Origin: Lepidodermella squamata | Taxonomy: Eukaryota > Animalia > Gastrotricha | Assembly (NCBI GenBank): GCA_047495785.1 | Contig: JBLDXI010000020.1 | Location: 434,001-498,000 of the forward strand | Reading direction: 5' to 3' | Length of the DNA stretch: 64,000 nucleotides | Shown here: piece by piece, positions 4,538 to 35,013 of the stretch | How positions within the stretch are numbered: position 1 is the first letter of the stretch | How the letters are laid out: each line of letters starts with the position of its first letter | The notes under the pieces: generated by a model | The model's input: the letters and a program-made list of their open reading frames with translations, nothing else | Database searches by the model: none | Told to the model about the DNA's origin: nothing | Translations under genes and position numbers: made by a program

Positions 4538-5047
4538 TTTATGGGGCTAATTAATAAACACTTGGAATCAATGAATAGTTCAATGTAATAAATTATTTTG
4601 CGGCTTCAAATGGAAACGATACTGACGTCTCAACTATGCAGCCAGAAAATTAATGAGAGTATTTGGCATCATCCTAAATCATCTTCTTTTCTAATGATGA
4701 GCATTGATCCGTAGATAAATATGAACTTTTTAAAGTAAAACATTCCTCATGAGGTAACTAGGAGGCAGGAGATGATACCGTCAAGCCTCGATCGCATGGA
4801 TGGATGGATGGATGTTAGACCCTGACACCAATTCTGGTGATTTAACAGGGCTTGGGTTGATAAGTTAGACCTGTCACCGATAATTCGGTGTTAGGCGACC
4901 GTTCGTGAACGTGTGTAACTGACTTGACTTCGCAAGGTCATGCGAAGGCAATGAGCGTCTGTAGTTACTACTAATTGTGTTGTTTTTGAGTTTATAAAAG
5001 TAACATTAATTATTATTGATGGGTTTAATTTAACTGGTGTGAAGTTT

Positions 5048-14299: not shown

Positions 14300-15897
14300 A
14301 TGAACTTCCCGAGCGGCGGTTTGCCCAGCACCGCCTCGTTTTACGCTTCACCGCAAGCGGGCGTGCCATTTTGCGTCACGCCCAACGTTTGCGCCACGCC
14401 TTCCGTCAACTGGCTGACGGGCGCTTTTAGTGGCAGTAATAACAATACCGCTAACAACAACAACAACTACTACTACGAAGAAGCCTACATCACAACAACC
14501 CCGCCATGGATAGCAACGGCGAAAGCCGAGTGTTTCGACACATCCTTTGGTGCAAGTTCGATCGCGATCGATGACACTCATGAAACTTATGCATTATCTT
14601 CCCCGGGTCAAACAGCGAACCTAAATGTGGGCGACCTGCGGTTGAATCTATCGAACCCACCTGGTCTCACGAGCCCTGAACTTCCCAACTTCACCCTCGA
14701 TTTCATGCCTGATCAACAGCATCCACCAATTACATACCTCCAAATCGGGGCAGAGTCAAGTTTTTGCAAGATTCCCGCAGGATCCGCAGCGGGAATTCGA
14801 ATTTCTGGTAATGCAAATGAAACACCGTCTACTTTGTCTCCAACACTAAGGATCGACCAAAACCAAAACGCCCTTCTTTTGGCTGCACTGAGAAACGAAG
14901 TTGCAGACGCTGTCAGCAGCGACGACTTCAAGATGGAAACTGAAAATATATTGATAAAGCATCTGCAAAAAGGCAAACAATTGGAAAGTGGCACTTTAGT
15001 TGCTGATGTGGCGGCCAAGTCCACGACCATGAGATTGAGGTCTTGCTCAGATTGCGGCAAGAAATTCACGAAAAATTCCTACTTGACCACTCACAAGAGG
15101 ACACACACCGGTGAAAAGCCATACAAGTAATTTTATTTTGAAATAGTAAACAAATTCGAATATTAATATCAAAGCATTTGAAAAGATCACAATTAAATCC
15201 ATAGGGGAGAAATTCCTTATCAAACTTGAACACTGCAAAATTGTTTAATTATTTGTTTAATAGGTCAATTTATAGCTGCAGTAACCCATAAGTGATAAGT
15301 GACACTAACTAACTTCTCTTTTTTAAACCCTACAGCTGCAAGTATTGCAACTCGTCCTTTGTCAGAAGTGACATACTTAAGCGACACATGCGAGGACATT
15401 CTGGCGACAAGCCGTATCAATGCGTCGTTTGCGGCGTAACTTTCCCCAGGTCTGATCGTCTTTTGCAACATGTACGTCGACAGGGCCACTGGCTGGAATC
15501 CTCAGACTACGAAAACGTAGCTAGCAGCAACACCAGTAGTAAACCGAAGCGGCGCCGTGCCGGTGTTGGCAAGAGTTCATTCGCCAAAAATTCATCATCA
15601 AGCCTGACTTCTGCCTCGACGTCGGCGGATATTAATAGAAATGGTGATTATTCGAACTCAGAGAAGCCGGTGCCTTTGCCTTGGAGAACGCCAACTTTAA
15701 GTAAAATGCTGCCCGAAAATGTAGTTGCTCCGCCTGTGGTTATGCCGCCATTCTACCAAGATCCTTCGAGCCAAAAGTTCTTGCAACCTGGCGAGATGAG
15801 CTCAATTTTGCACAACGCGATATGGGATAATCAGAGTAATGATAATCACAATTCGCCTCTTCAAGGTGCCCAAACGGCGCCTGTTAATCAGCTGTAA
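14300..15897 (+). CDS. Three-finger C2H2 transcription factor, divergent KLF/Sp-like (2 exons)
   Basis: Fingers CSDCGKKFTKNSYLTTHKRTH-TGEKPY, CKYCNSSFVRSDILKRHMRGH-SGDKPY and CVVCGVTFPRSDRLLQHVRRQGH joined by one intron of about 207 nt. Confidence 0.8.
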
Positions 15898-17210: not shown

Positions 17211-20200
17211 ATGAAAGTTGATAAAACGAAAATTCGATATACGACTGAACTGGTAAGTTGAAAACATGGCCTCGTCATTTTCTTCTAATATGAGCTGTGA
17301 TTGACTTTAGCCACCGGACTGTAAAGTTGTTATCGAAAGGTTGAAAAAGTCATCTCGAACTGAGCTTGTTCAGTACCTACGCGAGTTTCAGCTTTGGAAC
17401 CTGAGCAAGGTGAGTTGTTATCCTGATGTCCAATTTTTGAATCAGAATCCATTCAACTTCTATCTATTCAGTCTGAGCTCGCTTACTGGAGTACTGTTCT
17501 TGATATTTTCGATGGCATTCTCGAGGAATGCAGCCAGCCCGTGAACTCTAACATTTGGTGTTTGTACTGTGATAAAGCGGAGAATGCAGAGGTAATCATG
17601 GCTATAATATTGATAGTTGATGGCTATTGAGAAACCCACCTTTTTCTAGCTGCGTGAGACGGCATGCTGTGTTCTCAATTTTATGGCGCTCCTTATCGAG
17701 CATACTTTTGGGAGACATATATTCAGCAGCATCGACAGAATTATTCTCCTGCTCAACACATCCGACGTTTCGCTGTTGAATGCAACTCTGTCACTTTTGT
17801 ACTCCTTCAGGTTTGTAATACCAAAATAGCTTGGCTTGTATTGTTTAACGATTTTATTTTATATTAACCAGTAAGCGTTCCAGTTTTATTCAGAGGCTCG
17901 ATGCGGATGTGCACGGCGTTTTAATGAAAAAGATGATGAGCATCTCGGAAAGTTGGGGCGAGCGTGAAAATGGATTCAGTTTAGCAGACTGCTGCCGACA
18001 CGCATCGGCCCAATCGTTTCCCCGAAATCCCCTGGCGTTTTCTTTCGAGTACTATTTTGTGCCGGAAATTGGAGATAATTCATCTTCCAAAAATCGGAAG
18101 ACTGCTGTAAACTCTGGTCCATCTCAGCTCGCCTGCTTGCGATGCGATCTTGCTGAAGATTCGTTTACTGGGCTTTCGACCGGTGAAATAATGATCAAAT
18201 TACTGTCAGAACACCGCATTCCAGAGGCTCGGCATCAACAGTTGTTCCACCGCCTTCGCTTAGCTAGGGGGTTCGCTGATTATCCTACTCGTTTGCAATT
18301 GATTGAGTCTCGTCTGTTAACTTTGACCACTCTAATTTACTGTCGAACGGTATCATCTTCTGCGATCACGGTCACATTCATCGAAGAGGTGGCTGAATTG
18401 CTACAGCTTGCCCCGTCTACAGTGGGTAAAGAATCCACCAGTCGTCTTTCTCAGCTCAAGGGCGCTGCGTTGAAGCTTCTGACAGCGCTTGTTCATGCCG
18501 AACTAAATGGCTATAAAAAGCTTTCAACAATAGTCGATTGCTTGGGTGTTAACGATTATCATGGCTTTTTACCAAGTTTATTCCGTCAAACTGTCCAGAG
18601 CCTGTTAGAAGAAAGCAAGTCAGAGTCCGGAGAGCTCACTCGGCCGAATGGATTCACGACCTGTATTTTTTCCCTCCTTTACCACATGGCTACAATCGAG
18701 CCAACTGGTTCTGGTGCTCTACTCACGGCTGGTCTGGTCGAACCATTGTTAAAGGTGGTAGGCTGGTATTCTCAGACTGAGGAGAACTTGGCCTACGTCA
18801 CCCGCGCGGTTCGCGTTGTTAATTTAATTTGCGACTATGATGCAACCAGCTTCTTTCAACTCGGTGGTCTCAACATCTGCGTTCAGCGCCTCGAGCATGA
18901 CGTCGAGGTGTGTCGTCGCGAGGAGCCGTTCGAAATTCAAGCCGAGTGGCTGCAGGTCTACATGGACCCTGCCCAAGGTGCTGAGCAACAAGCACAGCAG
19001 CAAGAAAACGCTGGTGATGCCCCTGCAGCCTCGCCGGGCGCGACTGGTATGGAGGTTGTGCCGCCAGTTATCAAGCCGGAGACGAGCACCCGATCAGCTG
19101 AATGCAGCCAGCAACGCATGGCTTTGCTAAAATCGCTTCTGGGATTTTTCAAAGACCTTTTCGCCAATCAAACACATGCGGACCAGATCAGACGTGTGAT
19201 GGACGCTGCCGTCCCGCGCTGCCTTCGTCACATAATCTCTAACCCTCAGTATTACGGTCCAACTGTGTTCCTGAACGCCGTAGATCTCGTTACTCGTTAC
19301 ATTTATCAGGAGCCGTCACTGCTGTCCCAGTTGCAAGACTCTGGTTTCACCAATGTCGTGTTATTCGCACTGATCATCCGCGATGTACCAGCCACGCGTG
19401 AGGTTCTTGCCCAACTACCGGCGGCCTTCAGCGCTCTGTGTCTGAATCAGCGGGGCCTTCAAACTTTCATTCGCTGCCGTCCATTCGATCGACTGATGAA
19501 GTTTTTGTTCTCACCCGAATATTTGCCAGCGATGCAGCGACGAACCGGCGGGAAAGATGCGGGTGGAAACAGTGACACTGCTCGATCGCTTGGTCTCGCT
19601 GTGGATGACATGATGCGACACCAGCCAGCGTTGAGGCCAGATACGATGCGGGCTCTCGTTAAGTTGCTCGAGCAACTGGGAGTGATGGGTCGTGATAAGA
19701 ACGCCACATGGGTGGGTGTTGTCTCGACTTCTGAATCGAATTCTGCTGCGAGTGGCAACGGCAACGAGCAGATTTTCCAACAGGCGAACGACGATGGTGG
19801 CAGCACGTCTGATGACGATGAAGATGGCGTCAATTTACCTCCACTTGCCGTCGTTGGGGTCAGTGTGAACAACAACTCGAACTCTAACCAGCAACCGTCG
19901 GCTGTTGGTGGCGGGGTTTCTCAAGGTGCGTCGAGCACACCTGCTACTGGAACTCCGGGTACTACTAACGCCGCAGCTCCGGGTGCCGAACCGACTCGCC
20001 GAAAACCTCCTGTCACAGAATTTATTTATAATACGGTGAGTTGTCGATAGTTATTTAGGTATTCATCGCAATGCATTGATCTTCGCTTAGATTCTAATTA
20101 TGGAAGTATTTTCGCGGAATAAGGCATTGCAACATAAATTCGTTATTTAGTTTTTATCCACCTAAATTAATGCCTATCGTTTTGGTGAATGCTAAATTTT

Positions 20201-23200
20201 GATACATTTCTTCTAGATGAGATTCATGGAAGCGATGTTGAGCTCGAATGCGACCGACGATCACTGTACTGCCTTCGCCAATCAAGGTGGAGTCAAGCCA
20301 TTGCTGTCTTTGCTGACTCTTCCGCATCTCCCGTTGGATTTCGCCGGCTATCATGCTTGCGATTCGATAGCCGCCGTTGTCAAGTCAATGATCGGCCTGT
20401 CCCGTAACGGCCAGTTGGTAACCAAGGCGTTTGAGCTGTTGAATGAACAACTTCGATTGCCTATTCTCGAAAATTTCTCAACCAATGCGTTACAACAAAA
20501 GTCGTCGAGCTTGTGGGCGGAGGCGAGCAAGGCACGCAGTGAGGAAGAATTAGCCGACCCTACATTTGCCCCTCTACTTCGTGCCCTTTCGGCCGTCCAC
20601 GCCATCATGAGCATGCTGTTTCATCTTTCATCAAACCAGCAAGAAGTTCGAGCTGTCCTGCTCACATCATGGGCGTCATCGGAGGGTCTTTCACTTCTCG
20701 TTCAATTAACCCAGCTCTATACTGCTTTGATATGGGAGTTCAGCCTTCTCGTGGTTGAGGCAGATAATATCGTTGCGGAACAACAGCAGCAATCTGAGTC
20801 TGACAAAATGGAGACAGCAAGCGGGTCGGCTGAAGCGCCCACCCCAACGACTCCAGCCCCGATGGTAATGACCGACCGGGTACGACTGTACAAGTTTGTT
20901 GCCGGACTGGCTGCGGACCAGTTGAAGACTTTCCACCAACTGTTCATTCATTTGGTCCGGCTAGCGGCTGCTACGCCGACACGTCGCACCCGGCTCGGCA
21001 TGATGGTCCCCCCAGTCAGCCCAGCCTCCCACTGCCTGGCAGCAACCGGGTGCCGGGCGATTCACGCCGCTCTTTCAGCATCTCTCCCAGCCGCAGCTGA
21101 CACGAAGGCCAAGCTGAAGTACTACCAAATCGCTGCGGGTACTTTAACATGGCTATACGATGATAGCAATCAGCCATACCACATTCTGTTGTCGTATTTC
21201 ACCCCGATCGGTTGCCGGGATGCGTTGAAATGGGTTCTCGAGTATCTGTTGACTCTCGACCCAGCCACCGTCCAACCTCACACCAGCGGGCAAGCGATTT
21301 CGTCGGCGACCGGCGCGACTCCTGGATCGGCTAATCGACCTTCCCTTCCTACAATGATGGCGATATCCGTGGACAGCACGTTGTCAGATTTGCTCACCGA
21401 ACTCCGCCGATTGTGCTCAACATCGGTCGTTGTCGATTCGCCCAACTCACTGCAGGCAACTGGCGGCACTGGGGCAGCTTACTTGCCCGGCATGAGCCCG
21501 TCAGCTCAGCGGAATGCCACGAATGGCAACTCTGGAGCTGACTTCGATGCGAGCTCTTTCGTAGCCGGCATGCATTCTGTCGCTTTTGCACTGCTTCAGC
21601 AGGCTTGGACATCTTCGAATCGCAGAATTGCCACATCTTCGGTTTCTCCCCTTCTCGTCGATATTATGTGCCATGTTGTCGGTTCTCCACAACTCTCCGT
21701 AAGTTACCTAACTATTGAAGCTTTTTAGAGATTATTTGATAGTATGATGTTAACATAAATGCATGTTTGATTCCTGATTGATTATTAGCTCTATCTGATT
21801 CTCGTATATTCTAGCCGTTGCAGTACAAAGATTTCGAAACACCGATTTTATAACTTATATATTTTTCAGGAGAAAACTGGCGGCGAAGAAGAGAAACTCC
21901 CGAATGGGCAACATTCAGCTGCTTCGACGTCTGCCAACGCTGCAGCGCCTGTCAGTGCCAATTCGGCTCACGAGTTGGCTGTCGCTAGCGCCGCGCGTTT
22001 AGCCTCGGTTATTCGTGAGGCCCAAGCTGCTCTTGAACCACCTGTTAGTCAGGATCATTTGCAACAATTGTGCGACATGGGCTTTCCTCGAGAACTCGCG
22101 GTAGAAGCCCTCCTCAATACCAATAATTTGGAACAAGCTGCTGACTACTGTTTGACCCATCCCGCTCCGCCACCTGCTGCTGCCGCGCCTTCAGCACCAA
22201 CCGGGGCCGCTGTCGAGCCTGCAGTCGTTGAACCAGCTGCAGCGGCGGCACCGCCACCTGCCAACAACGCTGGTGTTCCGGCGCTGCCACCAGCCCCGCG
22301 CTCGTTAGCAAGTGGCCCTGACTTTTTGAACTACATGATGATGAACATTCCACAAATGTCTCGAGCCCCATTTTCTGGACTGCCTCCTCTGCAGCCTGAA
22401 CCAAGCGCACCTGGCGAACAAAGCCAGGGCAAGTCGGCGACCCAGGCTCAGCAGCAAAGTCTTATCGACCCTGCCGATGTCAACGTTTTTTTGACAAAAA
22501 TCTTCAGTGGTTAGTTGAAACTTTTGCTCAGCTCTTATGTTTTTTATACTTTTTTGTTTGAATTTAGATTTGATGCTCCTAGTTGAGAGCAATCAGCTGA
22601 TTGTTCCCAAAGTTGCGTCGTTGTTGTCGAGTGCAATTCGCGCGAAGCAACCGATAAACGGCACCACATTGTTCACCATGCTTCTCGAGTCGACCATCCA
22701 GCTAATTGAAGATCCGAACCTGCTAACGACACAGGATGGCAAGAAGCGCCTTGCATCTCGGCTCTACTTGGCATCACTGCTGTTAAACGGCATCAAAATC
22801 TTCATCGATTGCTCTTCGGCAAGGTCTTTGGCGAATCGCTTGGTTGCCCTCCTGGCTAATGCTGATCTTGACTCGACGTCGAAACAGCAACCAGTGTGGA
22901 TCGCGCCGGCAATTTGCTACATCGACGTGTACATCGAATCAGCTGTCGGTGCTTACCTGCGCACATTCACCTTGAAAGCGTTGGAAAAGCCTCATCGGTG
23001 GCAATGGTACAAATCGGAAGACAGGCAACCGAAATGGATTGATTATTCAACGGCTGAAGGCAAGCTGCTTGATGCCGCCTACAAACGCGGCCAGCCAACC
23101 GTTCGTCTGTTTGTCAATTCTCGGTCAGTTGTTGGTGGCCCGCCCCAGGCTGGTAGTCGTCGCTCATACACGATCGATTTGCGGAAAATGCGCCAGGTTA

Positions 23201-26200
23201 GTATAAATGATTACAATAATACCTATTAATAACAGTGTGAAATTCGATGATGATCTACTTATGCATGCTTGATTCCTGATTGATCTATTAGCTCTATCTG
23301 AAATTGGATTTCTTATTGCGATTTGACTTCATTTGGCTGCAGTATTTACATCTCATTTTATTTTCAGGTGGCTGATGATAGCGGAACAGGACGTCGAATT
23401 CGAATTGCCGCATCGTCTGGCAAGCCATTGTCTCCTGCATCTGAGGGCCCGTCGACGAGCAATGACACGATGGAAGTTGACGAATCATCGACATTAGGTG
23501 GTCCCACTCGAGAATTCGACTTCGCGATCACTGAAAAATTCCGTCTCGTCGAATTCTGTGTCCGAATGCTGGGGCTCGAAGATTCTGATGGATCTTGCCA
23601 TCAAGCGGTGTTACTGCTTTTGGCTCGTTTGACCTCCGAAGCCGCATTGTGCTCTCATTTTGTGATTTGCGGTGGGTTGAGATCGCTGCTGCAATTGCCA
23701 GCGACCCCGACTATCCTATCGCTGTCATCGGTGGTCATGCTTTTATTGCGACATGTTCTCGAAGACACGACAACTATTCGAGCGATGATGGAGAGGCTTT
23801 GCCGAACGTTGGTTGGTCAGCCCACCGAGCGTGACCGTGAGCGTGAGATGATGTTGGGCCATCTACCCACCGCCAACGGTCAAGGTCAAGTTGGCTCTAA
23901 AGAGTTCCACTATTTTGTTCAGCTCATGGCACCTCTCATTTGCAAAAACATGGATTTGTGGCAAGAAGTTTGCGAAAGCGTTGTTCGTTTGCAAGCTCCG
24001 CCTAACAACAGATCTGACGATGATGAGAGAAGTGGAACCACCGCAGCTTACTGCCGCTTGGCCGCGCATTTGCAGCAGAGCGGTAGTGCCCACGGCACTG
24101 CGGCTTCGAACAGTCTCCCAGCTGGGAAAAGCGGCGGATCCCTTCCAGCGCCGCAACAAAATAATAGCTCGAGCTTGCCGATAACGCATCAACAACCTAC
24201 ACTGAATGAGTCTGCGACCTCTATGATTCGTATGTTGCTAGCTCTAGTCTGTGAAAAGGACGACGATGAAGCGGATGAATCCGCTGTAGCTGCGGAACCC
24301 GCGAAACAAGTCGAGGCGAAGGCCCCTGAAACAGCTGCGGCTGCTGAGGAAAAACCAGCGGCTACAGCGCCAAAGAGAACAAAACTTTTCTCTCGAAATT
24401 TTGTCCTGAGGGCTTTGGCCGAATTGGTCCGAGCGTCCCCTGCTGTTTCGCTTTTGGTTGTGCATTATCAACATCAGCCGATATTAATGAGCGCAACTGA
24501 TTCACAGGAGAACTCACCAACTGCCTTGTCGTTGATTTTCGACGACCTTCTGACCCGGCCAGCTGTTTCGAACGCTGCGAGTCGCTTGGTTGCTGCCGTG
24601 GCTGCTTGCTATCAATGCCCAGAGGCTCAAACAGGCCTGGTCAGTGAAATCAAATTAGCAATGGGTCGTGCTTTGGCTCAACCTGAAGGCCCGGCGAAAC
24701 ATAGACACTTGCGCTGTCTGGCGGAGGTAGTCCAACTCATGATTCAGGTGTGCCCCTCCCAACAACCGACTCCATTGCCGTCGACTATCATCGGCCGGCC
24801 GTCGGAAAAACTTCAGCCGATGAATAATATCATTCGTTTGATGTACAAACGCGGTTTATTGGCTGATCTTGCCAAGGCCAGCCACAGCCTCGACCTTTCA
24901 TCGCCAGAATTAGCTGGTACTATCAATGCCTTGCTAGGTCCGCTTGACACGTTGTGCCGGGCGGTGAATAGCCAACATTTGCAACAACAGATTCAGTCTC
25001 AGCAACAGTCGCAACGCGCGACGAACGCCGCGAATGCTGCTGGCGGCTCGGCGAGAACCACCGGGATCGCTGACCAGCAGACACAGTCAACTCAATCGCA
25101 TGGCGGTAATCAATCGCAAAATCGGCATCGCGAACGAAACGCGGCCGGTACTGCTGCCAACACTCACCGAGAATCAGCGAATTCGAACCAGACCGCCCAG
25201 CCAGGTGGTAATCTTGACTCTGGGGTCAACTCGGTCGCAACTATTACTACAGGTACGGCTGGGCAGGCAGCGGCAGGTGGTGCTGAAGGTGCCGACCTGG
25301 AGGAGTCGCTCGGCCCTGAGTCGATGCACCCGGCTGACGAGCCTTCGATGGAGCACATCCTCGAACGGCTGTTGACTGACAATCACTCACATGACATCCA
25401 CGACCTGTTGGGCGTAGTGCCGCCTGTCAATGTCGGCGGTGGGCGCCGTCGCCATCCTCAGATGGTTGTAATTGAAGACATGTCTTCGGGCGAAGATGAG
25501 GATGACGCGGAGGAGGGCGAGGAGGAAGAGCAAGAAGATGACGATGACCAGGACGGCGCCATGGCTGACAATAACGCAGGCGACGAAGCAGGTCGTGAAG
25601 GCGACAACAATCGTCAAAACGTCGAAGCAGCTGCGGGCCGCATGGAAGTCGGAGAGGTAGAGTCGGAGTTCGAAACTGCTGACGACGATGATGACGAGAA
25701 TGAAGATGGCGAAATGGGCGAAGATGACGAAACAAATGAGGATGAAGAGGGCGTCATGGAGGAAGAAGACTCCGAAGCCGATGACGATGATTACGGGGAC
25801 GACCAGGAATCTGGCGCAACCGAGGCTATCAGTGATGAGGCCGGCGATCATGTGCATGGTTTCATCCCAGGTGATATCGACCTGATGCTTGGCGCTTTGC
25901 CTGGCGATGATACTCCTACTTTGCCACCAGTCCCAGCTGCGAACGGAGCGGCGGCAGCCCCGATCCAACTACCATCAGCCGGTGGCAATGTTTTCGCCCA
26001 TCCTCTACTATCCCGAGCTGCTGTGGCCCCGACTGGTCACGCTCGCACCGCTCTGGGCACTGCTTTAACCGGCGGTTCGGGCTCAATCGGTATTTTCGCC
26101 AACGGACCGGGTGGTCAATTCCGTCAACCCCGTGGCATCGGTTTCTTCCCTCGCCAACGACAGAACGCTGGCGGTGTCGCCGGAAACAACATCCAGGCCA

Positions 26201-29200
26201 TGGTTTTCGAAGAGTTGAATGCCGACTTCTTCCGTCATGTTTTCGGTGATCTGCTCGGCGGTGAAGACGTCGACTACCGTTTACCTGGTGGTCACTTTGA
26301 CCAGTTCATCTCTGAATCTAACCGCCGACATGGTATCTTCCTCGGCGGTGGAGCTGGCAGTCGTGTTCGAGGCATGGACAATTTACTGCAAGACGGTTTG
26401 CCAGCTGGTGGCTGGCAAACAGTTGGTGGCATTGACGTGAATGGCCGATTTGACTCGCCATCTGCCGTTATTGCCGATGTTCCATCGACCTTACAACGCT
26501 GGTCGGAAGAAGCGAGATTGCTGTACGGAAACCATATCCACGACATGGTTTTGGCAGCTGACCGCCGTCTATACTCTGCGTTGTGTCGGGTACGCGAAAA
26601 GGAAATGCGCGAACAACAGCATCAACAACAGCAACAACAAGCTCAACAGCAGCAGCAGACTTCTGCTACGGCGTCGAGCGCTCTTTCGGCTGTCGGATTC
26701 GGCCAGGGCAATGCTGGACTGCGCGCCATTGGAATTGAAGAAGATATCCCAAATCCGATTGCGCCTAGCCGGTCTCGGCACCCGGCTGATCACACCGAGT
26801 CCCTTGGCCGATCAGCTCGAACCAACCCTCTACCTGCTGTCGAACAGATGGAGGCAGTTGCCGCGGCGCCCGATGCGCCGGCTGTTGAACCGAACCAGGC
26901 TGCCGAAGCGTTATTCCGGGGTGCGACCGGCCTCTCAGTCGATGAAATGCAGACGCTTGCCAGTCTTATGACATTTGGCGACAGTAGCACTGCTACAAGT
27001 AGCTCGGAATCGGCTCGGAACAGCGATTCAGTCCGGCCGGATTCAAATGTCGAACAGCCGATGGAGGCTGACGGTGCGCAATCTTCATCGCATGCGCCCG
27101 GCAGTGAATCGGTGTCGCCAGGCCGCCTGATGGAGGTTGTTCCTCCTTCATCGGAAGACACAACCCCCGCTGAAAACGTCCCTGCAACTAGCGGACCGAC
27201 AGATTTGTCTCGGGCTCGCCAGGCCAGTGCTACGACTCCCACACCCACTCCAACTACAGCAGCGCCGGTTGCTGAGGCTTCAGGTGGTCCGGCTCCCTCT
27301 GCCGCGTCAGCAAGCAACTCCGCCGCACCGGAGCAGCCAGTCGGCCTGGAAGGGATCGACCCGTCGTTCCTGGAAGCTCTTCCTGACAACATTCGGCAGG
27401 AAGTCATCGCCGAGCAAATTCGTTTGCAAAGTATGCGTCGCCAATTGCAGGAGAGCCGGGATGTATTGCAGCGTCTTGGTATCCCGCAAGACCAGGTCGC
27501 TGAAATATCGCCGGAATTTCTCGCTGCCCTTCCGCCGAACATCCAAGAAGAAATCGTCGCAGCTCAACAGGCAGAACGCGCGCGTTTGTTAGATGAGCAA
27601 CAGCGAGCCGCTGCTGCTGCCGCGGGTGGATCGGCTGCCGCTGCTCCAGCTGCTGCTGCGTCGGCGACCAGCAACCAGGCAGGTACATCGACTGGTCAAC
27701 AAGAGGGTATCGACCCTGCCACCTTCCTAGCTACTTTACCAGCTAACCTTCGCCAGCAAGTTCTCGCTGATATGGATGATTCGCTCGTCAATATTTTGCC
27801 GCAAGATTTGGCGGCCGAGGCTAGGCGATTACGCCAAGAGGCTGAAGAACGGCAAGCTCGCGTACTTCAACAGCGTTTGAATGACTTCCCGACCGGTCTG
27901 GAATTCGCCTATGGCCTTCGTCCTCCAGGTGTTGGCCGAGGTCGATTCGCCGCGTTCCGAACCTCGCTTCCTATTGGCCGTATGGGCCGGCCTCTTGCCG
28001 TGCAGCTGCGAGACGCGGCGGCTGAAGCTCGAGCTGCTGCGGCCGAAAGTGCTGTCAAGCAGTTGCTTGATCACGAAGGCCTATCTTGCCTCATCATTTT
28101 GTTGTTTGTTACGGAATCGCGAACCTACGCTGCACGACTAAAATCACTGCTGCTTTGCTTATGTCAGCATAAACCGACTCGGATATGGATTATTGATACG
28201 TTGATTTCCATCCTCAGACGAGCCGCAGACTCGGTCAGCTTACCTGACCAGCATATCAAAGTACAATACTTTTGACACCATAAATAACATAAAAATTACT
28301 TTTTTATAATTTAGAGCTCAAATGAAGCTGGTGGTTGGTTGAACATTGGCATGGAGTCAGCTCTCGGTGGCCGAACCCGGATTTTCCAGCTGCCACACGT
28401 TACTGGCAAGCGGGCAACTACCCACTCGCCATCAATCGGCATTCACCCGCAGGCTGCAACAACCGTTTGCCGGCAGGCGTTGGAAATATTGCAGGCTTTG
28501 GCGAAAAATTTCCCGAGCCAATTTGTGCAACCGATGATTAATCCTCTTGTTATCGACTCGTCTGGATCGCTGAATCCGCCACAGCAACAGCTAAGTCAAC
28601 CTGAACCTGATTTCTGGGAGGCACTGCTGAAACTTGACAATCCTCAATCGGCACCAGGTAATTTTTATTATCATAATTGAAATTGTTATTTGAATAATTT
28701 GTTAAAAATAGCTCCCAATGCCACACCCTCGACCCCATCGAAGCGTGGCCGGCTAAGAGGCGGTGTCAGTGGCACAAGTGAATCAGGTCCGACTCATGCA
28801 TCGTTGTCTTCGCCAACAGCCGTGGGTGTGGCCAGCACACCGCTAGCAGCTCTCATGGCCCTGTTAGGCGGTGCAAACGTCAAAAAATCACAACAGTTGA
28901 CTGACAAAATACTGGCGTTGATGAACATGGTTGCGCAATTGCCGAATTTGCCAGTTCAGATCAATGATTGCCAGAGACAGGCGGAGGCAAAGGAGCCGCC
29001 GGCTAAGACCACGTCGAGTGCCACTGCGGAAGAAATCAGCCAGTCGAAAGACTCTGACCAGCCTATCATTCCGAAGTTATTACCCCTTGTCATCAATGCG
29101 ATGATTGGGAAGGCGTGTTCGGAAGAAGGGCTGGAAGACGCGACATCGCTTCTCGGTCATTTATCTCTCGTCAATAAAGCGACGACCGAAACTGTGAAAC

Positions 29201-31293
29201 AGCTACTCATTGGGGCGGCTAGAGACGTCGGACGTGTGGTTTGCGCTAACGTCAGGAGTCTCTTGGCTGACATTGACCGGGTGTGCCCGCCATCTGAAGC
29301 CACTGATTCCTCAACATCGACAGATTCACACAATGTTGCTTCGAGTAGCTCGGGTGCTGCTGGTCGGCTGACTGACCGGTACACCGGAACAGAAGTGATC
29401 GTCTCTGCGCCGAAAAAGGCGCATATTTTGCCGGCTGATTTGCAACTCCCATCTGTTTCTTTGTTCACGAGCCGTACGTCAAGCCAGCGGTACCTACTGC
29501 GCATTTTGAAGGCGATTCGCCAGTTGCAGCAGCAAAATCAAGCAGCGACTACGAACGCGGCTAATATCGCCAATGTGCCGGGCGCCGCCAGGCAAAATTC
29601 AGTTGCTCCCCCACCACCAGCGGCGGCAGCAGCAGCAGCAGCTTCGACGGCTGTCCCAGAGCCAGTAGCGGCGTCTAGTGCCCAGTTGGAACAAGTTCTG
29701 CTAGCCGAACAAGTCGGCCTGGAAGATTTGTGGCGAGCCTTGAGCGATTCGCTTAGCCGGTTGGAGCAGAGTGCCGATCCTCAGGCTGTTCTGCTGTTGC
29801 AACCAGCTGTCGAGGCGTTTTTCATCGTGCATTCGAAACCACCAGAACGCCAACCAGCCGCTCAGGCAACGCAGCCTCGTGCGGGTCAGGCTCTGCAACA
29901 ACAAGCTGCGGCCCAGCAGCAGCAACAACAACCGGCCGCGCCTCATCACATAGTCCCGCCAGAGCCGATAAGCACTGCAGTGACACCGATGACGCCAACT
30001 CAGACGCAGTTACCGCCTGATCAACAACTTTTTGTCGTTTTTGCCGAAAAGCATCGCGTGGTTTTAAACCAGATTCTTCGCCAGTCGAATCAACCCCTTT
30101 CCGAGGGGCCCTTCGCTGTTCTGACTAACTACACCAGAATTCTGGACTTCGATGTCAAACGGCGGTATTTCCGGCAAGAACTCGAGCGGATGGACGAAGG
30201 CAGACGGCGTGACGATCTCGCCGTGCACGTTCGACGCCAGCAAGTGTTCGAAGACTCGTATCGCGAACTACACCGTCGCTTGCCTGAGGAGTGGAAGGCG
30301 CGATTCTTCGTCATTTTCGACGGCGAGGAGGGCCAAGACGCGGGTGGTTTGTTGCGCGAGTGGTTTGTCATTCTCAGCCGCGAGATTTTCAATCCTCACT
30401 ACGCTCTGTTCCGGACATCGCCTGGCGACCGTGTCACCTACGCGATTAACGAGCTGTCATCTTGCCATCTGGAACACTTGTCCTATTTCAAATTTGTCGG
30501 TCAGTTGATAGCGAAAGCTATCTACGAGAACAAATTGCTTGACTGCTACTTCACTCGCTCGTTCTACAAACACATTCTGGGCATCCCGGTCAAGTACACT
30601 GACATGGAATCTGAAGACTACACCCTCTACCGGAACTTGGTCTATTTACTCGAGCACAACGCAACCGAGTTAGGGCTCGATTTGACATTTTCGACTGAAA
30701 TCCCCGAATTCGGTGTCATGCGAGTTCGGGATTTGAAGCCGGATGGGCGCAATATAGCGGTCACTGAAGAGAACAAGCGTGAGTACGTGCAGCTGCTTTG
30801 CCAGATGAAGATGACCGGCGCTATCGAGCAACAACTCGACTCTTTCCTCGAGGGCTTCTACTCGATTATCCCACGTCGCCTCATTTCGATATTCAACGAG
30901 CAGGAACTCGAACTGCTGATATGCGGCCTGCCTACCGTTGACATCGAAGACCTGCGCGTAAACACCGAGTACCACAAGTATCAGCCCCAATCGCTGCAGA
31001 TTCAGTGGTTATGGCGGGCGTTGCGGTCGTTTTCCGACGCCGAACGGGCTCGGTTCATGCAATTCGTCACCGGAACATCCAAAGTACCGCTTGGCGGTTT
31101 CGCCAATCTCGAAGGTATGCACGGTGCTCAGAAGTTCCAGATCCATCGGGACGACCGTTCAACTGAGCGTCTGCCGACGGCACACACCTGTTTCAACCAA
31201 CTCGACCTGCCTCCGTATGAGACGTACGACAAGCTGCGCGAAATGCTGTTGATCGCAATCACTGAAGGATCGGAAGGTTTCGGTTTCGCGTGA
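17211..31293 (+). CDS. HUWE1: HECT E3 ubiquitin ligase HUWE1 (about 4,300-4,400 aa, about 11 exons)
   Basis: Spliced N-terminus [18 protein letters not shown]; ARM-like region, UBA ([13 protein letters not shown]), WWE, acidic tract, UBM repeats ([18 protein letters not shown]) and HECT ending [14 protein letters not shown]...EGFGFA. Confidence 0.97.
20066..20209 (+). ncRNA. Probable intronic box H/ACA snoRNA in HUWE1 intron 20036-20216
   Basis: Hairpin 1 gcaatgc/gcattgc with internal pocket; H box ACATAA at 20132-20137; hairpin 2 atttag..cacc/ggtg..ctaaat; ACA at 20204-20206 plus 3 nt; total about 143 nt. Confidence 0.65.
21740..21801 (+). ncRNA. Intronic box C/D snoRNA, SNORD44/U44-like (18S Am166 guide), copy 1
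   Basis: C box ATGATGT 21744-21750, D box CTGA 21795-21798, guide TATTAGCTCTA complementary to conserved 18S UAGAGCUAAUA; D box is 71 nt from the 3' splice site of intron 21699-21869. Confidence 0.85.
23241..23305 (+). ncRNA. Intronic box C/D snoRNA, SNORD44/U44-like (18S Am166 guide), copy 2
   Basis: C box ATGATGA 23247-23253, D box CTGA 23298-23301, same guide at 23286-23296, aatt/aatt terminal stem; D box is 66 nt from the 3' splice site of intron 23197-23367. Confidence 0.88.
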
Positions 31294-32001
31294 TCGGAAT
31301 GTATAAAAACTTTTTCAACCCTTGGAAAACATTGATGCTGTGAGCAAAAATTGGTCGTTTTTTAATTTCTTAAAAAAACTTTATCTTAGCCACATGTGTA
31401 TTAAGCGCTCGTCTTACCACAACTAAAATTTTGGTTACAATCTGTGACTGTATATATAGCGGTAGATGACAAATAAAATCGTTATATTCTAGCATTAATG
31501 ATCGAGTTCGAACTCTGTTGTGCTCTTCTCTAGTGTTGTCGCTTATCTTGCGTTGGTGTGGTTTAAGTTTTCTGATACATACCGTTCTGTTCGGACTCAA
31601 GAATGTGCAGAATTCTTATTCATTATACATATATATTCTTATTATATATAAAATGATATATATCAGTGTGGAAATGCAACAAAATGATTACATGATACCA
31701 CGCCGCTATTTGAAACTGTGGTTTTGTCAAAATGATATAATATCTATCTATCTTTGGTTGTAAATACAAAGAATCGTATAGCAGAGAAAGAAATATCTAT
31801 ACTGAAAAACTGTAATAACTATAATTGGAACAGCTATTCAAGGAAAATCGGCATGCCAGCTCTGAGCATCTAATGCGCAATGTTTCGGTCATTTTGTTCG
31901 TAAAATCTTGGCTTTGTCTCATTCAACAATAAAATAATAAAAGCAATCAATATGATATAAATCGGGCTCATTTTTTTTAATTTTAGGGCTGACTTTTTAA
32001 A

Positions 32002-33071
32002 ATGCCTGAAATCGACAGCGACTGCATGACTTTGACGCGCTTCGTGCTTTCGGAGCAGCGCAAACATGCTGGAGCAACTGGTGACCTCACCAAGGTACTG
32101 AACGGCCTCCTTACTGCGGTTAAGGCCTGCTCAAATGCTGTTCGTAAAGCTGGTTTTTCAATGCTCTACGGCCTGGCTGGTAGCACCAACACTACTGGTG
32201 ACGACCAAAAGAAACTGGACGTATTGTCGAACCAAATGTTCATCAATGTAGGTCCCCATATTTTCATCTAGATGAATTTTCAGTACACCTTGCTTTGCAG
32301 ATGCTCCGATCGTCTTTTGCTACTTGCCTGTTGGTATCGGAAGAGGACGAAACCGTGATTGAGGTGGATCCTGAACACCAGGGAAAGTACATCGTGTGTT
32401 TTGATCCCCTCGATGGGTCGTCTAATATCGACTGTCTCGCCTCCATTGGCACAATTTTCGGAATTTATCGTAAGACCCACGATGGCCCTGTGTCCCAATC
32501 GGACGCTCTGCGCCCCGGCCGCGAAATGGTGTGTGCTGGTTACGCTCTGTATGGGTCAGCTACTGCCCTAGTTCTCGCGACTGACTCCGGGGTCAACGAA
32601 TTCATGCTCGACCCTTCTATTGGCGAGTTCATTCTGACGAACCGCAATTTGAAAATCAAGCCCAAGGGCAACATTTACTCGTTGAACGAGGGCTACTCGA
32701 AGTCATGGGACAAGGCGGTTACCGAATTCGTAAACCGCAAGAAGAGCTTGCCAAAGCCATATGCTGCCCGCTATGTTGGCTCGATGGTTGCCGATATCCA
32801 CCGAACCCTGTTGTACGGAGGCATTTTCATGTACCCAGCCACCAAGGACGCCCCGAACGGAAAGCTGCGTCTGTTGTACGAATGCAACCCGATTGCATAC
32901 ATCATTGAAAAAGCTGGTGGCATTGCATCGAACGGTCGTATGCCGATTCTCGACATCCAGCCGACTGAAATCCACCAGCGGGCTCCTTTCTTCGTCGGTT
33001 CGAAGGAAGAAATGACCGAAATACTCCAGCTGTACAAGGAAATGGACTCTGCCAATGGAGTCGCGAAATAA
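32002..33071 (+). CDS. FBP1: Fructose-1,6-bisphosphatase (2 exons)
   Basis: [43 protein letters not shown] and [11 protein letters not shown] motifs. Confidence 0.96.
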
Positions 33072-33366
33072 ACCGGATTCTTCCTAACTGCTGATTCAGG
33101 AGATAACTAATATATTGATATAAAATGTCTAGAATAGACAGAAAAACTTCACGAACACTGATGTGCCCAATATCCTAATCCAATGTGATTTTTCTTCATG
33201 GTTATGCTGAAGTATTAGTTATTTTTCAGCCAGGATATGTTTAGTTTGACCAGGACCGGTACTAATGATAAAGTGCTCTACCAATTCCAACTTATTAATA
33301 AATGATGCAATTGAAGCTCCTCTGTTTATTTTTAGACCATTTTGAGCATGTAGAGAGAGGGATGAA

Positions 33367-35013
33367 ATGACTCTGCCTGTTACCAAAGCCGCTGTGATGA
33401 ACGACCCACTGGTCGGCACGCAAATTCTAGGCTACCGAATGGGTGTACGGCTTGGGCAAGGCTCGTATGGCACCGTTAGTAATCTTATACTTAAGCATTC
33501 CATTGAAAAACACTTCATTTTTCAGGTATATCGCGGTGAAAAAATTAGCTTCAGTGATCTTTCTGAACTTGATGGTTCCCTGCGGCAAGCCGTAGTCGCT
33601 ATAAAATGCATCGAAAGAGGCCGGCTGTCCAAATCTGGCGAGGACAACTTAGTCGGAGAAATCGCCACCTTGAAAAAGCTCATCCATCCTAATATAGTTC
33701 GACTAATAGACTTTTGGGTAAGTTAATTCCGGAACCTGGCACAGAACTTTCAATTTACAGTTTTATTCTTTTCAAAAGTGGGACAACTTTAGAGTCTACC
33801 TGTTGACTGAATATTGTGCAGGTGGCGATTTGGCCAACTACCTCGCGCGAAACGGAGCGTTACCTGATCACATGTTGCATAAGGTGACATCGCAGCTCGT
33901 CGAGTCACTTTACTATCTCCACGGGCTAAATATTGTGCACCTGGACATTAAGCCGCTGAACATTCTTCTGACGTCAACCGTCGATCCAGATGTTAAGCTG
34001 GCTGACTTTGGCTTCGCTCGAAAATTGGTCGCGCCAACGAAAGCGTTGGTTGGATCTTTGTTGTACATGTCCCCTGAAATGGTGCGTGACGGTGTGGTAG
34101 ACAAACAGGCCGATATGTGGAGCCTAGGCACAGTGCTGTACGAGTGTGTCTATGCGATACCCCTATTTGCGTCGAAAACTGAGGAGGAATTGCTCGAGAA
34201 GCTAACTTCCGAAGATCCGGTCAAGTTGCCGGCTACCCCGAAGATCAAAGAATCTTTTCGTGACTTGCTCTTCCACTTACTTCAACGAAACCCTAGAGAG
34301 CGTCTTTCAATCGAATCGGTGCATTCTCATCCATATGTCACGAAAGTGAAACCGAAACGTCCTGGCGCCCCGGGCCTGACGCGCCCGATGTCTGTGCCTG
34401 TCACTTTACAGAGTACAGCTAGAGTCGATGCGTACACGTTAGGAGTCGCCAAAGAGATCACGCGCTTCCGTCCTGATTTTGTTGATAAAGTAGCTAGGTC
34501 GATTCATTTGATTGAACAGGCGCTAGATGCCGAGAATCATCAGGATTGGCCGCATGCGTATCAGCACTACACTGGGGCTGTTGAGCTGGCCCTGCCTATT
34601 TATCAAAGTTTTCGCCAGGATGCAAATGCAACGACTGAATTAAAGTCAAAACTTCGGCAAATTGTAAAGAAAATTATTCTTAGGTTGTTCTATGATTATG
34701 TGGGTTTTTTAAGGTGGACGATTGGTTACGGCGTGGCGAGGAGGCGAAACGACGGACGCAAGTTGCCGATACTAAGCAGGTTGGCATTTACTGTGATCGA
34801 ACCCATTCAACTTCCACTTCGTTGCCTGTAACACAAATGACTGTTAATGTAATTCCTGAAATTGCTGCTAGGAAACCTGGCCGCGGCGCAACGCCAAGTC
34901 CGCTGCCGCCTGTAAACCCTCTCCAAAATGTGGATCAGGCGCCAAGAGATGATCTCATACAACCCGGTGGCAATTCTTTTGGTATGTCTGATTTTTGCGC
35001 TTATTTTACTTGA
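33367..35013 (+). CDS. ULK3: ULK3-like Ser/Thr kinase with one MIT domain (4 exons)
   Basis: LGQGSYGT, VAIKCI, NLVGEIATLKKLIHPNIV, HLDIKPLN, DFGFA and GSLLYMSPE; C-terminal MIT-like helices (A..LIEQALDAE...AYQHY...WLRRGEEAK). Confidence 0.8.

Follow-up and report, generated by a model that had tools for sequence, protein, structure and literature searches.

In the window analysed here, a 64,000-nucleotide (nt) stretch of the genome of Lepidodermella squamata (contig JBLDXI010000020.1, positions 434,001 to 498,000), the orthologue of HUWE1 contains three long introns which are most likely ordinary intron-encoded small nucleolar RNA (snoRNA) genes. Two paralogous copies, A and B, of a compact box C/D element with a guide complementary to 18S ribosomal RNA (rRNA) are located in introns 6 and 8, and intron 5 holds a predicted two-hairpin RNA of the box H/ACA type. 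A first-pass annotation of the same DNA had proposed HUWE1 as a snoRNA host with a snoRNA-shaped insert in each oversized intron; both parts of the proposal were borne out by the boxes and guide in introns 6 and 8, by the two-hairpin RNA in intron 5 and by the same arrangement in orthologous genes. The coordinates of the features are presented in Table 1.

The homology searches of the HUWE1 protein were run exon by exon. With the exons translated separately, the Pfam domains DUF908, DUF913, UBA, WWE, UBM and HECT were found in the order of HUWE1. All 11 exons, with splice sites read from the sequence, were open and in phase and amounted to 13155 nt in total. Seven introns were 54-62 nt long, and the remaining three were 181, 171 and 171 nt; the lengths and coordinates first given for the long introns were reproduced exactly on re-reading. 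All three snoRNA-like elements are in the sense orientation of HUWE1, one per intron. One contig of the public run X2 omits exactly 20036-20216, with GT..AG ends, therefore intron 5 of HUWE1 is spliced in RNA. A further run, X1, consists of DNA from this organism, and two diverged haplotypes are visible in it.

The two C/D copies share one layout: a C box, a variable spacer, the 15-nt AUGCAUG(U/C)UUGAUUC, the D' box CUGA, a degenerate C' box (UGAUUA and UGAUCU, respectively), UAUUAGCUCUAU and the D box CUGA. The core from C to D box is 55 nt in each. In comparison with the C box consensus RUGAUGA, copy B was exact and copy A had one deviation, whereas the D box was CUGA in both. Introns 6 and 8 could be aligned over the central block only, where the cores (21744-21798 and 23247-23301) were 89% identical and the part from the D' guide through the D box 95% identical. 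The flanks on both sides were 54-55% identical, which is the value of shuffled flanks. Conservation of boxes and guides no higher than that of the flanks had been named beforehand, together with a lack of discrete intronic RNAs, as the result that would speak against snoRNAs; between the C/D copies, boxes and guides were more conserved than the flanks. The copies are distinguishable by a U/C difference at 21766/23268 and a 1-nt indel. The 16-nt string of guide and D box occurred twice in the window, compared with 0.03 expected occurrences, and no further C/D copy was detected in the 64 kb besides those of introns 6 and 8. A variant contig of X1 matches the window until just past the D box of copy B (23302) and diverges thereafter.

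For the guide-target scans, 114 contigs with the conserved 18S segment were fetched; complete small-subunit (SSU), 5.8S and large-subunit (LSU) rRNA genes were confirmed with Rfam on the three contigs tested. The D guide of the C/D copies pairs with the universal 18S sequence UAGAGCUAAUA. Eleven contiguous Watson-Crick pairs with TAGAGCTAATA were determined in 114 of the 114 18S loci; as the site was part of the pattern used to fetch the contigs, this count is in part predetermined. Counted upstream from the D box, the second nucleotide is the first to pair, and the nucleotide at the fifth position is therefore the A of UAG[A]GC. In the three loci checked, this A was at SSU position 161-163; presumably it corresponds to A166 of human 18S rRNA. 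Methylation of human 18S Am166 is guided by SNORD44 (PMC11550049). The 11-bp (base-pair) pairing with the target at the fifth position, for which box C/D RNAs are expected to have at least 10 bp, agrees with the initial proposal that the C/D guide is aimed, as that of SNORD44, at the A166 equivalent.

At the gathering score of Rfam, no family was matched anywhere in the window. Below it, the family snoZ102_R77 (gathering score 40) was matched by copy A with 24.4 bits and by copy B with 22.4 bits, and the 17-nt UAUUAGCUCUAUCUGAU, comprising guide and D box, in the consensus of this plant family is identical to the window copies. The top-ranked match, SNORD11 with copy B (25.5 bits), was also below threshold. 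For the three introns, the first-pass reading thus found no backing at gathering level, while the sub-threshold match of introns 6 and 8 with the shared guide and D string was in its favour. The E-value mode over the whole window gave three weak matches which were discarded as spurious: SNORD47-like (17828-17898, across an exon/intron border), EBV sisRNA and CrcZ. Judged by their guide and boxes, the window C/D RNAs would function like SNORD44 and Z102-R77 but miss the curated membership score.

The D' guide is conserved between the paralogues and therefore probably used. A scan of the 114 ribosomal DNA (rDNA) loci, which allowed up to 2 mismatches or asked for paired runs of at least 9 bp, identified no conserved rRNA target of this guide and resulted in singletons or matches on the 18S antisense strand only. 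The region UGCAUGYUUGAUUCCUGA (21760-21777, 23262-23279) is similar to the 5' end of 18S in sense orientation (GGUUGAUCCUG, AUAUGCUUGUCUC), and the recurrent matches therefore fall only on the antisense strand of rDNA; this likeness is probably a coincidence. The D' guide may address an rRNA segment specific to the lineage, a spacer or some other RNA. Among U1, U2, U4, U5, U6, 5.8S and U3, the best pairing was a weak one with U2 near C28 (10 bp, of which 3 were G-U), which was rejected as unconvincing.

Several features of the C/D copies weigh against the snoRNA assignment. In copy A, the C box deviates from the consensus (UGAUGU) and a terminal stem adjacent to the boxes is lacking; in both copies, hardly any sequence separates D' from C'. 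The compact size and the near-contiguous D' and C' are unusual, yet inside the known range of compact snoRNAs. The first two features, with copy B having both the consensus C box and the stem, suit an explanation in which only the intron-8 copy works and the intron-6 copy is a decaying duplicate no longer forming a ribonucleoprotein. However, the stretch of 95% identity, D' guide through D box, stands between flanks at shuffle level, and this argues for continued constraint and against decay. In addition, intron 6 has not shrunk to the norm of about 55 nt. Decay of copy A is considered rather unlikely.

The second line of evidence, that of intron 5, is carried by relatives; the fold in the window alone would be weak. 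A word search with exon 9 resulted in one protein, 54% identical, on two near-identical ENA metagenome contigs, L001 and L002; L001 contains the orthologous gene with the same neighbours, fructose-1,6-bisphosphatase (FBPase) and a kinase with a MIT domain. With exon 5, more distant HUWE1 loci with few introns were found. In the JGI metagenomes, the search with the WWE-exon alignment matched 269 pattern stretches, of which 0 were confirmed. L001, L120 and L122 have a homologous RNA in the corresponding HUWE1 intron, as L119 possibly does, and the lengths are 137-152 nt across the five species including the window.

Hairpin 1 folded better than its shuffles in two species, with z values of -2.15 (window) and -2.88. 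In four species (window, L001, L120, L122), the strands of its pocket are constant, UUGAUC or UUGAUU on the left and UAA(G/U/A) on the right, whereas the lower and upper stems differ in sequence with the pairing kept. The lower stems of the four species are GCAAUGC/GCAUUGC, GCAACGU/GCAUUGC, UUUGCGC/GCGCAAA and GUGCAC/GUGCGU. MAFFT and RNAalifold gave no consensus structure for the five RNAs because the MAFFT alignment is not structural, and a covariance model built from the window sequence alone recovered only L001 (18.6 bits, E 0.23), not L120 or L122. Due to these uninformative results, the covariation of the hairpin 1 stems was tabulated by script. Constant guide strands together with covarying stems and unconserved flanks are the pattern of a conserved guide RNA. 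In the predicted window RNA, hairpin 2 is followed by UACAUUU. GAUACA was detected near the 3' end in four of the five species (window, L119, L120, L122), and L001 has GAUAUA with UUUUACA ten nucleotides upstream.

The target of the first pocket was searched for by scoring bipartite matches against the rRNA of locus L018. The best site was the same for the pockets of all four species: UUUA-UU-AGAUCAA(AA) at SSU 214/215 of L018, where the window pairs with 4+7 bp, L001 with 3+9, L120 with 4+7 and L122 with 5+7. In an alternative register one nucleotide on, UUUAU-UA-GAUCAAA, the same site of L018 is matched. The site is in the 5' domain of 18S, about 50-60 nt downstream of the A166 site, and we take it to be the neighbourhood of yeast pseudouridine (psi) 211. 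The guide of yeast 18S psi211 is snR49 (PMC5699541). Two findings count against this assignment: 7-16% of shuffled pockets reached the pocket score somewhere in the L018 rRNA, and two registers, with the first or the second U, fit the target. As so many shuffles reach the score and the four pockets are homologous and not independent, a target of the intron-5 pocket in 18S near the psi211 position is probable rather than established. Within the window, the A166 guide and the pocket at ~211-215 thus agree with the first-pass theme of guides for the 18S 5' domain.

The remaining evidence against a canonical H/ACA RNA concerns its second half and its boxes. Hairpin 2 alone folded no better than shuffles (z -0.27) and its structure was not clearly conserved in L001; the fold of intron 5 as a whole was likewise no better than that of shuffles. 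The intron had no Rfam match even at E 10. The second X1 haplotype has seemingly UUA where the window has ACA. A canonical H box is limited to the window (ACAUAA) and L119 (AUAAAA), and the others are off by one position: AAAUUG in L001 and L120, AUAUAG in L122. These findings, in addition to the only moderately significant fit between pocket and target, would suit a conserved structured intronic RNA of another kind, such as a guide with one hairpin or a hairpin acting in splicing or regulation. In contrast, all the RNAs are of similar size (~140 nt, compared with about 120-160 nt in the H/ACA class), two hairpins are joined by a 9-nt hinge, and GAUACA is kept near the 3' end in four species. 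The internal loop with constant single strands and covarying stems, the top of which is 12-14 nt before the hinge box (in the class, its distance to the H or ACA box downstream is ~14-16 nt), has H/ACA geometry. An RNA of another kind is therefore considered unlikely.

Chance box-like motifs or remnants of mobile DNA in introns that are long for unrelated reasons are very improbable: AT-rich introns are rich in UGAUGA-, CUGA- and ACA-like strings and the search of public sequencing runs listed no RNA run covering the region, but the paralogue conservation is restricted to the box-to-box core, the 11-bp guide match is to a known methylation site, hairpin 1 is kept with covarying stems in orthologous introns of four species, and the guide and D string far exceeds its expected number.

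If the three introns are snoRNA genes, we infer processing, assembly of small nucleolar ribonucleoproteins (snoRNPs) and modification by analogy, the release step following the well-known pathway. After splicing, debranching of the intron lariat would be followed by trimming as far as the snoRNP proteins on the RNA. The paralogous box C/D snoRNAs, compact with 55 nt between the outer ends of C and D box, would thereby arise from introns 6 and 8. With the D guide on 18S UAGAGCUAAUA, fibrillarin would carry out ribose methylation at the A166 equivalent, where SNORD44 acts in humans; both RNAs would also expose the second conserved guide upstream of D'. Intron 5 would release a box H/ACA-type RNA of ~144 nt, the first pocket of which (UUGAUC(U) / UAAG) would hold 18S UUUA-UU-AGAUCAA, so that one of the two central uridines may be converted to pseudouridine, at or next to the position of yeast psi211.

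The length of the introns tracks their cargo, as had been supposed at first, because a snoRNA does not fit into an intron of about 55 nt. In L001, the short HUWE1 introns are 48-62 nt, and the long ones, at matching positions, are intron 5 (177 nt), intron 6 (360 nt), intron 7 (173 nt) and intron 8 (166 nt). Intron 7, which is 58 nt and empty in the window, contains in L001 a C/D-like element with the A166 guide UUAUUAGCUCUAU after an AUGAUGG box. Similarly, L120 has the RNA in an intron of 175 nt at position 5, compared with an intron of 56 nt without the RNA in L121. The C/D cargo of introns 6 and 8 differs as well: in L001, these introns contain paralogous C/D snoRNAs with a different guide, CACCAUCUUUCG, which pairs over 12 bp with LSU CGAAAGAUGGUG in 18 loci and resembles Rfam snoZ196 below threshold (37.2 bits, E 0.009). 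Due to these LSU guides, the "18S only" theme is not conserved across species. HUWE1 is a snoRNA host across this group, in which the intron-5 H/ACA RNA is old and the C/D cargo is exchanged.

Further elements were observed in the relatives. Intron 6 of L001 (4669-5028, 360 nt) contains, besides the C/D snoRNA at 4890-4954, ~200 nt of upstream sequence, the fold of which was not superior to that of shuffles (z -1.23); a second cargo may be present there. A third copy of the LSU-guide C/D snoRNA (AAAUACCAUCUUUCGAGUCUGA) is at L001:17700-17790, in an intron of the kinase/MIT gene downstream of HUWE1, the window counterpart of which, the gap 33727-33802 of ~77 nt, is empty. Within the equivalent of exon 6 of the window, an extra intron (L120:6080-6165, L121:4195-4363, L117:11480-11552) holds a conserved C/D-like element (GUGAUCA…GAAGAUGAUCUAUUC(U/A)ACUGA), for which no conserved rRNA target was found. 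The gene order HUWE1, FBPase, protein kinase with MIT is common to the window (31300-34831) and L001:14699-18762, a tandem duplication of FBPase being noted for L001 only. Directly upstream of HUWE1, on the same strand, a C2H2 zinc-finger gene is present at 14300-15897. Between 19500 and 23900, the X1 haplotypes differ by up to ~8% in places, with 27 differences over 321 nt at 22460-22782. On the other genes of the window, a crude GT..AG/open-reading-frame intron finder was too noisy, and its long candidates were without clear boxes.

Table 1. Predicted RNA elements, HUWE1 gene structure in the window and the intron at position 5 of related HUWE1 genes.
Feature	Position	Strand	Description
Predicted box H/ACA-like snoRNA	20066..20209	+	~144 nt; hairpin 1, 9-nt hinge, hairpin 2, ACA tail; ends inferred
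Hairpin 1	20068..20130	+	7-bp lower stem 20068-20074 / 20124-20130 (GCAAUGC / GCAUUGC)
Hairpin 1 pocket	20075-20081; right strand ending 20123		Left AUUGAUC; right (A)UAAG; upper stem UUCGC / GCGGA(A)
H box candidate	20132..20137	+	ACAUAA (ANANNA) inside 9-nt hinge AACAUAAAU
Hairpin 2	20140..20202	+	Lower stem UCG..AUUUAGU / GCUAAAU..UGA; weakly supported
Hairpin 2 pocket			UUUUUAUC / AAU; upper stem CACC / GGUG
ACA box candidate	20204..20206	+	Within GAUACA, 10 nt before 3' splice site
Box C/D snoRNA copy A, C to D box	21744..21798	+	Intron 6; identified by boxes and rRNA guide
Copy A, C box	21744-21750		AUGAUGU
Copy A, D' guide	ending 21773		AUGCAUGUUUGAUUC
Copy A, D' box	21774-21777		CUGA
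Copy A, D guide	21783-21794		UAUUAGCUCUAU
Copy A, D box	21795-21798		CUGA
Box C/D snoRNA copy B with terminal stem	23239..23312	+	Intron 8; C-to-D core 23247-23301
Copy B, terminal stem	23239-23245 / 23306-23312		7 bp, GAAAUUC / GGAUUUC
Copy B, C box	23247-23253		AUGAUGA
Copy B, D' guide	ending 23275		AUGCAUGCUUGAUUC
Copy B, D' box	23276-23279		CUGA
Copy B, D guide	23286-23297		
Copy B, D box	23298-23301		CUGA
HUWE1 orthologue, coding region	17211..31293	+	Host gene; 11 exons, 4384 codons + stop
HUWE1 intron 1	17253-17310	+	58 nt
HUWE1 intron 2	17410-17471	+	62 nt
HUWE1 intron 3	17592-17649	+	58 nt
HUWE1 intron 4	17811-17871	+	61 nt
HUWE1 intron 5	20036-20216	+	181 nt, GT..AG; host of H/ACA-like RNA
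HUWE1 intron 6	21699-21869	+	171 nt; host of C/D copy A
HUWE1 intron 7	22510-22567	+	58 nt, without cargo; internal control against L001
HUWE1 intron 8	23197-23367	+	171 nt; host of C/D copy B
HUWE1 intron 9	28261-28314	+	54 nt
HUWE1 intron 10	28658-28711	+	54 nt
L120, intron at position 5			175 nt, with H/ACA-like RNA
L122, intron at position 5			303 nt, with H/ACA-like RNA hairpin
L119, intron at position 5			214 nt, possible homologous RNA
L121, intron at position 5			56 nt, without the RNA
L117, L123			No intron at position 5
Lepeophtheirus salmonis, Armadillidium nasatum (crustacean HUWE1 genes)			No intron at position 5

Human HUWE1 is the host of the microRNAs (miRNAs) let-7f-2 and miR-98, as was also stated in the first-pass annotation. 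The human and mouse genes are listed among miRNA host genes (PMC7016697). In the literature search, no paper naming HUWE1 as a snoRNA host was found, in line with the initial statement that no description of this pairing of host and guide was known; the pair is real and probably new to the literature, and the gene arrangement itself is ordinary. The functional coupling of rRNA modification to HUWE1 expression, proposed in the first-pass annotation, is speculative. A ribosome-related host is plausible given that HUWE1/Tom1 removes ribosomal proteins left unassembled (PMC5026473). It could be supposed that HUWE1 is an old, actively maintained docking gene for snoRNAs and that, with this activity of the ligase, the pairing is a selected co-expression module for ribosome homeostasis, not a passenger. 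The basis of this supposition is that the same few introns are long over large distances, that the H/ACA RNA is in intron 5 of at least four species, and that the C/D cargo has been swapped (the 18S A166 guide in the window, an LSU guide in L001 with a further copy in the adjacent kinase gene). This reading is quite unlikely in our estimation.

By this result, the annotation of a compact animal genome gains three probable snoRNA genes, with two modification guides for which 18S targets are identifiable and one further, unassigned guide. It also presents a natural experiment in which the same intron is ~55 nt when empty and at least ~170 nt with a snoRNA, within and between species, and this contrast supports intron length as a cheap detector of non-coding RNA in such genomes. 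A host gene is documented to keep its snoRNA-bearing introns during the turnover of cargo, and the current view of how snoRNAs work is unchanged.

In comparison with known systems, the C/D copies are nearest to SNORD44 (U44), which is likewise an intron-encoded box C/D RNA with a D-adjacent guide on 18S UAGAGCUAAUA and the A166 equivalent at the fifth position. The host of human SNORD44 is an intron of the non-coding GAS5, whereas that of the window RNAs is the protein-coding gene of an E3 ligase. The window RNAs are also much more compact (55 nt box to box), are present in two copies, have an extra conserved D' guide and remain below threshold in Rfam. The plant snoZ102/R77 (RF00359, clan CL00060) is the second-best Rfam match overall and the best one fitting the guide, with which the 17 nt of UAUUAGCUCUAUCUGAU are shared; in contrast, the scores are 24.4 and 22.4 bits compared with 40, the 5' half is unaligned, and both the kingdom and the genomic context are different. 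With yeast snR49, which serves 18S psi211 and also psi120, psi302 and 25S psi990, the intron-5 RNA has in common the neighbourhood of the predicted target, UUUA-UU-AGAU. No sequence similarity to snR49 was detected, the intron-5 RNA has no Rfam match, and snR49 is an independent gene whereas the intron-5 RNA is intronic. The arrangement as a whole corresponds to that of the intronic host genes, namely ribosomal protein genes, GAS5, UHG/SNHG and Drosophila Uhg, in which one snoRNA per intron is released by splicing and exonucleolytic trimming and paralogous copies are located in neighbouring introns.

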